Positions 1-20,434 of a DNA stretch of 64,000 nt are shown one piece after another; the first letter of the stretch is position 1, and the number at the start of each line of letters is the position of its first letter. Source of the stretch: Bugula neritina (lineage: Eukaryota; Animalia; Bryozoa); contig CAXIUT010000097.1 of the NCBI GenBank assembly GCA_964035545.1, positions 1-64,000 of the forward strand. The letters run 5' to 3'. The notes beneath the pieces are model-generated. The model was not told the DNA's origin. It searched no databases and saw nothing but the letters and a program-made list of their open reading frames with translations. The position numbers and the translations under genes are program-made.

Positions 1-458
1 AGTGTATTTCAGTATGTTGCAGTATATTTTAGTATGTTGCAGTATGTTGCAGTGTGTCGCAGTATATTTCAGTATGTAGCAGTGTATTTCAGTATTTTGC
101 AGTATATTTCAATGTGTTGCACTGTAATTCAATATGTTACAGTGTATTTTAGTATGTTGCAGTAAGTTGCAGTGTGTTGCAGTATATTTCAGTATTTTGC
201 AGTGTATTTCAGTATGTTGCAGTGTATTTTAGTATGTTGCAGTAAATTGCAGTGTGTTGCAGTATATTTCAGTATGTTGTAGTATTTTGCGGTGTATTTG
301 AATGTGTTGCAGTGTATTTCAGTATGTTGCAGTGTTTTTCAATGTGTTAGAGTTTATTTCAGTATATTATCGTATATTTAGGTATGTTGCAGTATATTTC
401 AATGTGTTGCAGTGTATTTCAATATGTTGTAGTATGTTGCAGTGTATTTCAGTATGTT
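1..458 (-). repeat. 10-bp/20-bp-unit satellite, inverted orientation (AGTATGTTGC / AGT(G/A)TATTTC on + strand); continues off the left edge
   Basis: Continuous 10-bp register. It is the reverse complement of the main array and by eye is identical to the reverse complement of 3620-4077, including rare variants such as ACTGTAATTC and GTTAGAGTTTAT. Confidence 0.97.
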
Positions 459-484
459 TGTTTGTTTGTTTGTTTGTTTGGTTT
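456..484 (-). repeat. (AAAC)n microsatellite 3' tail of the LINE
   Basis: The + strand reads (GTTT)6 at 456-479, then G, then GTTT. Short tandem-repeat tails are typical of L2/CR1-group LINEs. Confidence 0.85.
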
Positions 485-487
485 ATT
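482..487 (-). promoter_or_regulatory. AATAAA polyadenylation-signal-like hexamer at the LINE 3' end
   Basis: TTTATT on the + strand at 482-487, directly next to the tail. Confidence 0.5.
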
Positions 488-545
488 TCATCAAAGGTAT
501 TTAATAACACAAGGACATTAGAAAATGCCAAGGAGGCGATGATGA

Positions 546-584
546 GGCCCATTGCGCTATAGCCTAGCTAGTCATGCGCGGGCC
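546..584 (-). other. GC-rich stem-loop in the LINE 3' UTR
   Basis: Minus-strand RNA GGCCC-GCGC-AUGAC-UAGC-UAG-GCUA-UA-GCGC-AAU-GGGCC gives nested pairings GGCCC/GGGCC, GCGC/GCGC and UAGC/GCUA. Confidence 0.6.
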
Positions 585-632
585 AACACGAGCTGACAGC
601 GACTCTATCCAGAAAAATACAAAAAAATACAA

Positions 633-1006
633 CTATTCTAACAGATAAAGCCTCAACTTCCTCCCAAATTCATTAGGGTTGCTAATTGACCGTAAAGGGA
701 TTGGCAGTTCATTCCATAGTGCCACCTCCTGATAACAGTTTCTCCTGTGACCTGCTGCTGTTTGAGAGTGAGGAAGGGGGAGATTTATGAATGATTGACG
801 TGTATTGATAGAGTGAGTGGGAAAAAAATTGTCAGAGTAGAAAAAAGAATGAGCTTTCTTTAACACTTTAAAACGGTAAATCTGGTATATTGAGAGAACT
901 TTATGCTTAGTAAATAGAGGCGCTGATGGATGGTCAAACGGTTTTTTGTTCATGATACGCATTACCTTTTTTTGAAAAATAAAAATCTTGTTTAGATGGG
1001 TATTAG
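633..1006 (-). pseudogene. Fragment of LINE ORF2 (region C-terminal to the reverse transcriptase domain), about 124 codons, uninterrupted
   Basis: The peptide ANTHLNKIFIFQKKVMRIM...HPSAPLFTKHKVL...THSINTR...YQEVALWNELPIPLRSISNPNEFGRKLRLYLLE* matches the LQKxAxRxI, HxxPLFxxLxIL, HxYxTR and LWNxLPxxIR...FKxxLK motifs typical of the ORF2 C-terminus in L2/Crack/CR1-group LINEs. The ATG at 1055 in the ORF track lies in satellite. Confidence 0.85.
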
Positions 1007-4000
1007 CTGCAACACACTGCGACATACTGCAACATACTGAAATACACTGCAACACATTGAAATATACTGCAATGTACCGAAATATATGGTAAACTACTGA
1101 AATATACTGTCACACATTGAAAAATACTGCAACATACTGAAATATACTGCGACACATTGCAATATACTGTAGCATACTGAAATACGCTGTAGCACACTGA
1201 AATACACTGCAACTCACTGAAATATACTGCAAAATACTGGAATACACTGCTACATACTGAAATATACTGCGACACACTACAACATGCTGCAACATACTGA
1301 AGTATACTGCAACATACTGAAATACACTGTAAAATACTGAAATACACTATAACATACTGAAATATACTGCAACATACTGAAAAATACTGCTACATACTGA
1401 AATATACTGCCACACACTGCAACATACTGCAACATACCAGAACACACTGCAAAATACTAAAATACACTGTAACATACTGAAGTATACTGCAACATACTGA
1501 AATACACTGCTACATACTGAAATATACTGCAACACACAGCAACATACTGCAACATACTAGAATACAATGTAACCTAATGAAATACACTGCAACACATTGA
1601 AATATACTGCAAAATACTGAAATACACTGCTATATACTGAAATGTACTGCAACACACTACAACATACTGCAACATGCTAAAATATACTGTAAAATACTGA
1701 AATACCCTGCAAAATACTGAAATACACTGTAACATACTGAAGTATACTGCAACATACTGAAATACACTGTAACATATTGGAATACACTGCAACACATTGA
1801 AATATACTGCAACACACCTAAATATACGGTAATATACCAAAATATACTGTAACACATTTAAAAACACTGCAACCTACTGAAATACACTGCAACACACTGA
1901 AATACACTGCAAAAGACTGTAACACACTGAAATATACTGCAACACACTGCACTTTACTGCAACATACTAAAATATACTGCAACATACTGAAATACACTGC
2001 AAAATACTGAAATATACTGCAACACACTGCAACTTACTGCAACATACTAAAATACACTGTAACATATTGAATTACACTGCAACACATTGAAATATAGTGC
2101 AAAATACTGAAATACACTGCTACATACTGAAATATACTGCGACACACTGCAACATACTGCAACATACTAAAATATACTGCAACATACTAAAATACACTGC
2201 AAAATACTGAAATACACTGTAACATACTGAAATATACTGCAACATACTGAAATACACTGCTACATACTGAAATATACTGCAAAATACTGCAACATACTAA
2301 AATACAATGTAACATATTGAAATACACTGCAACACATTGAAATATACTGCAAAATACTGAAATACACTGCTACATACTGAAATATACTGCGACACACTGC
2401 AACATACTGCAACATACTAAAATACACTGCAACATACTGAAATACACTGCAGAATACTGAAATACACTGTAACATACTGAAATATACTGCAAAATACTGA
2501 AATACACTGCTACATACTGAATTATACTGCAACACACTGCGACATACTGCAACATACTGAAATACACTGTAACATATTGAAATACACTGCAACACATTGA
2601 AATATACTGCAATGTACCGAAATATATGGTAAACTACTGAAATATACTGTCACACATTGAAAAATACTGCAACATACTGAAATATACTGCGACACATTGC
2701 AATATACTGTAGCATACTGAAATACGCTGTAGCACACTGAAATACACTGCAACTCACTGAAATATACTGCAAAATACTGGAATACACTGCTACATACTGA
2801 AATATACTGCGACACACTACAACATACTGCAACATACTAAAGTATACTGCAACATACTGAAATACACTGTAAAATACTGAAATACACTATAACATACTGA
2901 AATATACTGCAACATACTGAAATATACTGCTACATACTGAAATATACTGCCACACACTGCAACATACTGCAACATACCAGAACACACTGTAACATAATGA
3001 AATACACTGCAACACATTGAAATATACTGCAAAATACTGAAATACACTGCTATATACTGAAATACACTGCAACACACTACAACATACTGCAACATACGAA
3101 AATATACTGCAACATACTGAAATACACTGCAAAATACTGAAATACACTGTAACATACTGAAGTATACTGCAACATACTGAAATACACTGCTACATACTTA
3201 AATATACTGCAACACACAGCAACATACTGCAACATACTAAAATACACTGTAACATATTGGAATAAACTGCAACACATTAATTATACTGCAAAATACTGAA
3301 ATACACTGCTACATACTGAAATATACTGCAACATACTGCAACATACTGAAATACACTGCAACACATTCAAATACACCGCAAAATACTACAACATACTGAA
3401 ATGCATTGTAACATATTGAAATACACTGCAACGCATCGAAATATACTGCAATGTACCGAAATATATTGTAAAGTACTGTAATATACTGTCACACATTGAA
3501 AAACACTGCAACATACTGAAATATACTGCGACACATTGCAATATACTGCAACACACTGAAATATAGTGCTACATACTGAAATATACTGCAACATACTGCA
3601 ACATAGTGAAATACACTGTAACATACTGAAATACACTGCAACATACTACAACATATTGAAATACACTGCAACACATTGAAATATACTGCAACATACCTAA
3701 ATATACGATAATATACTGAAATAAACTCTAACACATTGAAAAACACTGCAACATACTGAAATACACTGCAACACATTCAAATACACCGCAAAATACTACA
3801 ACATACTGAAATATACTGCAACACACTGCAATTTACTGCAACATACTAAAATACACTGCAACATACTGAAATACACTGCAAAATACTGAAATATACTGCA
3901 ACACACTGCAACTTACTGCAACATACTAAAATACACTGTAACATATTGAATTACAGTGCAACACATTGAAATATACTGCAAAATACTGAAATACACTGCT

Positions 4001-5399
4001 ACATACTGAAATATACTGCGACACACTGCAACATACTGCAACATACTAAAATATACTGCAACATACTGAAATACACTGCAAAATACTGAAATACACTGTA
4101 ACATACTGAAATATACTGCAACATACTGAAATACACTGCTACATACTGAAATATACTGCAAAATACTGCAACATACTAAAATACAATGTAACATATTGAA
4201 ATACACTGCAACACATTGAAATATACTGCAAAATACTGAAATACACTGCTACATACTGAAATATACTGCGACACACTGCAACATACTGCAACATACTAAA
4301 ATACACTGCAACATACTGAAATACACTGCAGAATACTGAAATACACTGTAACATACTGAAATATACTGCAAAATACTGAAATACACTGCTACATACTGAA
4401 TTATACTGCAACACACTGCGACATACTGCAACATACTGAAATACACTGCAACACATTGAAATATACTGCAATGTACCGAAATATATGGTAAACTACTGAA
4501 ATATACTGTCACACATTGAAAAATACTGCAACATACTGAAATATACTGCGACACATTGCAATATACTGTAGCATACTGAAATACGCTGTAGCACACTGAA
4601 ATACACTGCAACTCACTGAAATATACTGCAAAATACTGGAATACACTGCTACATACTGAAATATACTGCGACACACTACAACATGCTGCAACATACTAAA
4701 GTATACTGCAACATACTGAAATACACTGTAAAATACTGAAATACACTATAACATACTGAAATATACTGCAACATACTGAAATATACTGCTACATACTGAA
4801 ATATACTGCCACACACTGCAACATACTGCAACATACCAGAACACACTGCAAAATACTGAAATACACTGTAACATACTGAAGTATACTGCAACATACTGAA
4901 ATACACTGCTACATACTGAAATATACTGCAACACACAGCAACATACTGCAACATACTAGAATACACTGTAACCTAATGAAATACACTGCAGCACATTGAA
5001 ATATACTGCAAAATACTGAAATACACTGCTATATACTGAAATGTACTGCAACACACTACAACATACTGCAACATGCTAAAATATACTGCAAAATACTGAA
5101 ATACTCTGCAAAATACTGAAATACACTGTAACATACTGAAGTATACTGCAACATACTGAAATACACTTCTACATACTGAAATATGCTGCAACACACAGCA
5201 ACATACTGCAACATACTAAAATACACTGTAACATATTGGAATACACTGCAACACATTGAAATATACTGCAACACACCTAAATATACGGTAATATACCAAA
5301 ATATACTGTAACACATTTAAAAACACTGCAACCTACTGAAATACACTGCAACACACTGAAATACACTGCAAAAGACTGTAACATACTAAAATATACTGC

Positions 5400-19000: not shown

Positions 19001-19891
19001 TACTGAAATATATGGTAAACTACTTAAATATACTGTCACACATTGAAAAACACTGCAACATACTGAAATATACTGCGACACATTGCAATATACTGTAACA
19101 TACTGAAATAGGCTGTAGATCACTGAAATACACTGCAACCCACTGAAATATACTGCAACATACTGAAATACACTGTAACATATTGAAATATACTGCAACA
19201 CACTGAAATATAGTGCTACATACTGAAATATACTGCAACATACTGCAACATAGTGAAATACACTGTAACATACTGAAATACACTGCAACATACTACAACA
19301 TATTGAAATACACTGCAACACATTGAAATATACTGCAACATACCTAAATATACGATAATATACTGAAATAAACTCTAACACATTGAAAAACACTGCAACA
19401 TACTGAAATACACTGCAACACATTCAAATACACCGCAAAATACTACAACATACTGAAATATACTGCAACACACTGCAATTTACTGCAACATACTAAAATA
19501 CACTGCAACATACTGAAATACACTGCAAAATACTGAAATATACTGCAACACACTGCAACTTACTGCAACATACTAAAATACACTGTAACATATTGAATTA
19601 CAGTGCAACACATTGAAATATACTGCAAAATACTGAAATACACTGCTACATACTGAAATATACTGCGACACACTGCAACATACTGCAACATACTAAAATA
19701 TACTGCAACATACTGAAATACACTGCAAAATACTGAAATACACTGTAACATACTGAAATATACTGCAACATACTGAAATACACTGCTACATACTGAAATA
19801 TACTGCAAAATACTGCAACATACTAAAATACAATGTAACATATTGAAATACACTGCAACACATTGAAATATACTGCAAAATACTGAAATAC

Positions 19892-19899: not shown

Positions 19900-19909
19900 C
19901 AGGGTTGGG

Positions 19910-20078
19910 GTAATTGTAATTTGTAATTGTAATTGGTTGTAATTAATTACATTTTTTCAAGTAATTGAATGTAATTTGTAATTGATGTATAAAAATGTAA
20001 TTGTAATTGTAATTGTAATTAATTACATATCTAATGTAATTGATTTTTACAATTACTTTATAATTACATGTCAATTAC
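19910..20078. repeat. Left subterminal GTAATT/AATTAC repeat cluster of the hAT element
   Basis: Many GTAATT hexamers, with the palindrome TGTAATTAATTACA at 19938-19951 and 20014-20027. Confidence 0.85.
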
Positions 20079-20276
20079 TTCAAACTTTGAAATCCTAAAA
20101 GTTTCATACTTTTCCTACCATGCCTACTAATAAATAACAAATTCAGATTAATTGTCAATGTGGTATAGTATCACTGTTGAGTGCAAAGGAGGTTCAGCAC
20201 TGTCAAAATTGCCCCTGCTAGTTGGACCCTAGAGGTGAAATTGCATAACTTTTATTTATCTCTTGCGAGAACAAAA

Positions 20277-20422
20277 GTAATTGTAATTGTAATTAATTAC
20301 ATTGCCATGTAATTGTAATTGTAATTAATTACATTACTATTTGACTGTAATTATAATTGTAATTGTAATTGACAAATTGTCATGTAATTGTAATTGTAAT
20401 TAATTACATTCACATGTAATTG
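20277..20422. repeat. Right subterminal GTAATT repeat cluster of the hAT element
   Basis: Three GTAATTGTAATTGTAATTAATTACAT modules, with the palindrome at 20288-20301, 20320-20333 and 20395-20408. Confidence 0.85.
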
Positions 20423-20434
20423 ACCCCAACCCTG

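Follow-up and report, generated by a model that had tools for sequence, protein, structure and literature searches.

A satellite array of the bryozoan Bugula neritina presented a change of strand orientation across a single 5′-truncated LINE; this GT satellite-LINE-CA satellite order may well be a genuine junction left by an inversion or fold-back coupled to retrotransposition, the inverted side of which is the 458-bp tip of a contig as read from the assembly alone. The window (i.e., the whole stretch of 64,000 nucleotides analysed here) represents the first 64 kb of the 620-kb contig C106 (assembly: 216 Mb, 321 contigs), and nearly all of it consists of a 10/20-bp satellite. Contig C106 starts at window base 1, and its outermost 458 bp make up the GT-rich flank; here the satellite has a 20-bp period, the GT orientation (unit AGTATATTTCAGTATGTTGC), and a GC skew of +0.29. 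At 1007-64000, the satellite is found in the CA orientation (CTGCAACATACTGAAATATA), which is the exact reverse-complement orientation of the 1-458 repeat, with a GC skew of about -0.35 in each 1-kb bin. Counts of oriented satellite words were 0/54 in the first 500 bp, and later bins were without any reverse-oriented word. The CA satellite is interrupted only once, by a 535-bp TIR element (19900-20434), and the GT and CA satellites are separated by a non-satellite interval (459-1006). A preliminary description of this DNA had reported a strand switch across a LINE, with GT satellite at 1-458, a LINE 3′ end in the gap, and CA satellite from 1007, all of which is borne out here; the satellite limits given there (458 and 1007) also stand, whereas the LINE does not end at 1006, as its homology runs to 1011 and bases 1007-1011 are common to LINE and satellite (Table 1).

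Table 1. Features of the strand switch in the window, with the loci of the LINE insertions used for comparison.
Feature	Position	Strand	Remarks
Left flank, satellite in GT orientation, tip of contig C106	1-458	+	reverse complement 100% identical to 3620-4077 and 19267-19724
TGTT overlap between satellite target (…CAGTATGTT) and complement of LINE tail	455-458	+	presumed primer 3′ end annealed to RNA tail
LINE (CAAA)6 microsatellite tail	459-480	-	
LINE 3′ UTR	481-632	-	
LINE ORF, C-terminal ~120 codons	633-1006	-	open frame, stop codon at 635-633
CTGCA 5-bp microhomology between LINE (TGCAG on minus strand) and satellite	1007-1011	.	5′ junction
Right flank, satellite in CA orientation	1007-64000	+	uniform up to window end
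Paralogous empty target site (…CTGT AACA-TACTGAAAT…), then exact inverted twin of 1-458	3616-4077	+	
99.2% paralogue of the 5′-junction flank 1007-1600	4406-4999	+	786 bp rightward of the priming-site paralogue at 3620
Collinear sister insertions	C2:18687580; C135; C192:928049; C192:1296231; C192:1406201; C239:745099		

The interval 459-1006 contains the last ~550 bp of a LINE located on the minus strand and truncated at its 5′ end. At the bridge, the LINE ORF comprises ~120 aa with the C-terminus ...WNELPIPLRSISNPNEFGRKLRLYLLE before the stop codon, and is followed by the 3′ UTR and then (CAAA)6. This copy begins at ~4901 of a ~5.4-kb reference copy, to which it aligns as one collinear piece (single plus/plus alignment of 553-558 bp), and belongs to a 99.8%-identical LINE. 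The genome holds at least 40 other copies of the family at 98-100% identity, all of which reach the 3′ end but are truncated at different 5′ points, their sizes ranging from about 40 bp to >3.5 kb; one long copy (L034) carries a 912-aa ORF with Exo_endo_phos (E = 6e-9) and RVT_1 (E = 1e-40) domains. The bridging LINE is a very young APE+RT element. It can be classed as a putative 5′-truncated TPRT insertion of an APE-type LINE, as the domains, the common 3′ end, and the preferred nick site of such an element were all found; a TSD was not found at the bridging copy. A recognisable TSD was likewise absent from the dispersed truncated copies of this LINE family, of which at least 15 were compared; since the family leaves no TSD elsewhere, the missing TSD at the inversion junction is uninformative. 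The absence of a TSD, which had initially been put forward as a clue, is thus correct as an observation and carries no evidential weight.

The 3′ junction of the bridging copy (458/459) reads AACA-TACTG (hyphens mark junctions here and below), with the satellite end …CAGTATGTT passing directly into TGTTTGTT…; a TGTT primer is able to pair with the AACA of the LINE RNA tail. Whole-assembly pattern searches identified nine independent LINE-satellite 3′ junctions, all of which read (CAAA)nCA-T(A/G)(C/T)TG in one phase and one orientation, so the 3′ junction of the bridging copy matches those of eight other satellite insertions in both phase and orientation. Outside the satellite, a T directly follows the tail in 27 of 29 dispersed LINE copies. 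The left junction is an ordinary target-primed junction at the preferred site of the LINE family, because the nine satellite junctions share sequence, phase, and orientation and because the T recurs in the dispersed copies. The 3′ junction together with the 458-bp flank occurs a single time in the assembly, and a pattern search of the 216-Mb assembly for a LINE tail followed by GT-oriented satellite gave 0 matches.

Comparison of the insertion loci, based on ±1.5-kb regions around the pattern-search matches, revealed collinear flanks (CA-LINE-CA in LINE sense) in all six sister insertions with both flanks in view. The GT-LINE-CA order, in contrast to these six, was seen at the bridging copy only; as the sisters are collinear, inverted flanks represent an exception rather than a property of the target. 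The bridging copy also differs from the collinear sister insertions at its 5′ junction, where LINE and satellite have CTGCA (1007-1011), a 5-bp microhomology, in common, as compared to an overlap of 0-1 bp in the sisters. Among 200,000 simulated random LINE/satellite joins, which served as the null for this microhomology, an overlap of at least 5 bp arose by chance with P = 0.0064. The 5′ junction sequence (995-1023) is unique in the assembly.

Both flanks have close relatives within the array. Besides the two exact matches of its reverse complement (Table 1), the left flank has four further inverted counterparts at 98-99.6% identity, and the array at 3616-3624 reads AACA-TACTG without an insertion, i.e., it presents an empty target site. 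Paralogues of 1007-1600 (97-99.3% identity) are located at 4406, 20596, 46629, 15305, and elsewhere; these 5′-flank paralogues sit 650-990 bp to the right of each priming-site paralogue, with one spacing of 1329 bp that includes 543 bp of the TIR element. The spacing of the two breakpoints, as measured on paralogous blocks, is thus 0.65-0.99 kb, or 2.6 kb, which would be reached by chance in about 16-33% of cases, the repeat blocks being 2-5 kb apart. We infer that the cDNA end may have met the array on the same duplex, ~0.8 kb behind the primer from which it was extended; if the 100%-identical copy at 3620 was nicked instead, the join would lie 2.6 kb off, on the other side. This placement is by paralogy only and carries that same chance (about 0.16-0.33). 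Compared with the same paralogues, the left flank shows zero differences and the right flank 4-5 differences, a disparity (P about 0.13-0.18) that only weakly favours folding back onto the sister chromatid. The segment is not inverted in any of the window's paralogous blocks, and the assembly lacks the reciprocal junction that a local inversion predicts, in which the upstream block would run into GT satellite.

The sequence itself shows that the LINE endonuclease nicked the GT strand at the site it usually cuts and that …CAGTATGTT was the 3′ end from which reverse transcription was primed on the (CAAA)n tail; only a short cDNA (about 550 nt) is present, and its end is joined to satellite of the opposite orientation via the 5-bp microhomology. 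In the steps proposed to link these features, the resected 3′ overhang that bears the cDNA (the "primary RT end") may fold back, such that its tip …CTGCA-3′ anneals to a TGCAG of the same strand or of the sister chromatid; fill-in or extension and ligation would follow annealing. The product could be (i) a local inversion that takes in the LINE and about 0.8 kb of satellite, (ii) a hairpin fold-back (i.e., an inverted duplication) with the LINE and that segment in the loop, or (iii) a fold-back onto the sister chromatid. The geometry fits all three, and the contig end hides whether an inversion or a fold-back formed. The preliminary description had suggested, as one of two possibilities, that the LINE cDNA had been attached by its 5′ end to array sequence in inverted orientation; this suggestion gains from the canonical TPRT 3′ junction, the microhomology at the 5′ join, the exact inverted twin nearby, and the six collinear sister insertions, and loses from the absence of a reciprocal junction in the assembly and from an inverted flank that amounts to a 458-bp tip. 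As a separate point, which counts against the proposed reading, a fold-back chromosome would be unstable unless resolved.

Several other histories could place satellite of opposite orientations on either side of a LINE. The position of the junction at the very start of C106, with an inverted flank of merely 458 bp that is 100% identical to the array 2.6 kb away, raises the possibility of a contig-tip assembly artefact, in which a chimeric or hairpin-type read, or else a mis-join, gave rise to the first ~1 kb and the flanks are collinear at the true locus; neither reciprocal junction was assembled, and the round size of C106 (620,000) hints at post-assembly cutting. Such an artefact seems unlikely, as the 3′ junction has a biologically canonical form, a 5-bp microhomology (P = 0.006) would be rare in a blunt ligation chimera, and the 548 bp of shared LINE are too short for long reads to be mis-joined; the true locus should moreover supply a second 3′ junction with this flank, but only one exists. 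A palindrome caused by adapter loss was ruled out separately, given that the arms are 3.2 kb apart with a non-palindromic LINE between them. An inversion independent of the LINE, in which a later satellite inversion broke inside a normally inserted LINE or a pre-existing switch took up the LINE, with a deletion, would draw on the many LINE-free switches of this satellite, at least six of them large and with palindromic junctions, and a break inside a longer LINE would mimic 5′ truncation. This history is also rather improbable: the LINE makes up roughly 0.1% of the arrays (a rough estimate that counts about 10 insertions, each about 1 kb long), so a random break inside it is unlikely, and the microhomology at issue is one between LINE and satellite at a natural cDNA end, as opposed to the satellite palindromes of the LINE-free switches. 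Furthermore, no 5′ part of the LINE that ends at this point and is followed by GT satellite was found in the assembly, and the paralogous blocks of the window never carry the segment in inverted form.

Homologous exchange between LINE copies was considered as well, since copies that are 99-100% identical are good recombination substrates. NAHR between two inverted LINE copies, flipping the DNA between them, is nevertheless very unlikely; the nine satellite insertions all have one orientation, so copies within an array form direct and not inverted repeats. NAHR was rejected given that its reciprocal recombinant, the LINE tail joined to GT satellite, is the combination that had 0 matches genome-wide. 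Least probable, and close to untenable, is a 3′ transduction, in which the LINE would have read into downstream satellite and the composite would have been inserted backwards, with a second switch beyond the contig start. L034, which at first seemed to consist of a LINE with 590 bp of oppositely oriented satellite, appeared to offer a model for this history, but on reading proved to be a LINE in a different repeat beside an old direct switch; a transduction would also require an insertion orientation that was never observed, and no potential source, sharing this 3′ flank or this tail length, exists among the other LINE-satellite 3′ junctions. This explanation was rejected on the basis of the L034 junctions and the missing source copy.

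The retrotransposition-coupled reading places the event in a class already known for human L1 and involves no new mechanism. For human L1, insertions have been described in which genomic DNA is inverted on the primary RT end, or in which a foldback junction holds a TPRT insertion, including a tumour example with genomic DNA plus L1 inverted (3,275 bp in all) (10.1101/2024.12.14.628481); a fold-back model and an L1-bridged fold-back inversion in PCAWG tumours represent a further precedent (PMC7058536). The B. neritina junction resembles these events in that a tail-bearing 3′ junction is located at an endonuclease site, a 5′-truncated cDNA end is joined to inverted DNA that may lie close to the nick, self-annealing of a resected 3′ overhang could account for the microhomology, the scale would be hundreds of bp to a few kb, and one insertion spans a pair of breakpoints that lie in opposite orientations. 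It differs in that the bridging LINE, an APE+RT element of an invertebrate, is unrelated to L1, has a (CAAA)n tail, and lacks TSDs; and while the human events were found in tumours or cell clones, the B. neritina junction is part of a reference assembly and is presumably heritable. The target also differs, being a 10-bp satellite in which breakpoints are placeable by paralogy only, with the junction known from the assembly alone. Twin priming, which gives rise to 5′-inverted L1 copies, is similar with regard to a second priming or annealing during TPRT and an inversion junction with microhomology; however, in twin priming the LINE is internally inverted between collinear flanks, whereas the B. 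neritina LINE is collinear (plus/plus throughout) between inverted flanks, and twin priming was rejected on these grounds.

If the junction is true, it would represent a clean natural case of a retrotransposition-coupled inversion outside mammals and cancer, in which both junctions can be read base by base and the same window offers an intact empty site for comparison, and LINE activity would be tied to the structural evolution of satellite arrays. More tentatively, it could be a fold-back or local inversion, bridged by a LINE, that is heritable and was fixed in a natural invertebrate satellite array, such that "primary RT end" remodelling of the human L1 type would have operated in the germ line with a LINE of a distant clade and seeded changes in satellite orientation.

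Strand switches of this satellite were also identified at a number of sites without the LINE. At least six large LINE-free switches are present (C2:18279400, C4:14712990, C4:14743300, C7:9683980, C7:9686950-9687370, and C192:1835650). Searches with relaxed strand-switch patterns gave 25 and 115 matches; strict double-anchored patterns gave 0 matches and missed the known switch at L034, and were thus too strict. An enrichment of strand switches for this LINE, for which the preliminary description had proposed a test, was not supported, as at least six large and about 100 small switches are without the LINE and only one of the nine LINE insertions into the satellite is located at a switch. The LINE is not a general cause of satellite strand switches, because the six or more large ones carry none. 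The effect therefore looks small, and with one in nine insertions involved and most switches being LINE-free, the junction described here represents an illustrative case and not a general mechanism. The LINE-free switches are found in the same arrays and show the same head-to-head change of orientation as the LINE-bridged one; however, their junctions are palindromic (e.g., CAGTATACTG and CAGTGTATACACTG), the palindromes being short, perfect or near-perfect, spaced by 0-4 bp, and devoid of foreign DNA, whereas the LINE junction is asymmetric and bridged by 548 bp of LINE. Self-alignment across the LINE-free switches revealed background identity only (73-87%), which indicates that these switches are old; they are thus silent on the persistence of young palindromes. 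That the satellite inverts readily without any LINE counts against the retrotransposition-coupled reading; a tiny inverted block, also LINE-free and with a palindromic junction, is repeated about 100 times in C239.

Several large-scale strand switches, i.e., changes of satellite orientation along an array, were identified without a transposon (table); the junctions at all five of these loci (L048, L052, L063, L066, and L056) are short palindromes of satellite sequence. Arm similarity at these switches is only 73–87%, and they therefore represent old events. The two switches on contig C4 are separated by 30 kb and could be the two ends of one inverted block. A much smaller inverted block, TTTCAGTATGTTTCAGTA|TACTGCAA, occurs approximately 100 times in G000:C239:301-507 kb, with copies spaced 0.3–15 kb apart; this block is a micro-inversion amplified as part of a higher-order repeat.

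Among the dispersed copies of the LINE family (L002–L030), the tail varies from 4 to 12 CAAA units, and the first base 3′ of the tail is T in 27 of 29 copies; no recognisable TSD was found for at least 15 truncated copies. A long copy at L034 is hosted by a ~10-bp repeat other than the satellite (GTGCYAAAAT-like) and is flanked by degenerate satellite arms in opposite orientations; an old direct satellite switch is located near L034:850 (approximate position).

Coordinates of the transposable elements, satellite strand switches, and duplicated markers
Feature	Location	Strand	Details
TIR element	window 19900-20434		non-coding, 535 bp; ends CAGGGTTGGGGTAATTG… / …CAATTGACCCCAACCCTG
Locus L034, containing a long LINE copy	G000:C192:1834800-1844799	minus	912-aa ORF at 1622-4360 of L034
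Large-scale strand switches without transposon	C2:18279400; C4:14712990; C4:14743300; C7:9683980; C7:9686950-9687370		L048, L052, L063, L066, L056
LINE junction, both C135 copies	120199/287326
Strand-switch motifs, both C135 copies	132045/299172, 140021/307148, 149692/316819, 161195/328322

All markers found in contig C135 are present twice at a fixed offset of 167,127 bp (about 118–162 kb versus about 285–329 kb), a doubling that reflects either a large duplication of very recent date or one introduced by the assembly. Contigs C106 and C192 measure exact thousands of bp (620,000 and 1,857,000), suggesting that a scaffolder, or a curation step, cut contigs at binned coordinates; such possible cutting bears on how contig ends are judged.

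The TIR element within the window looks like a hAT-type MITE and has an 8-bp TSD (ACTGCTAC). Its empty site is represented by the paralogous block at 3620–4406 of the window, which differs in length from the TIR-bearing block by 543 bp.
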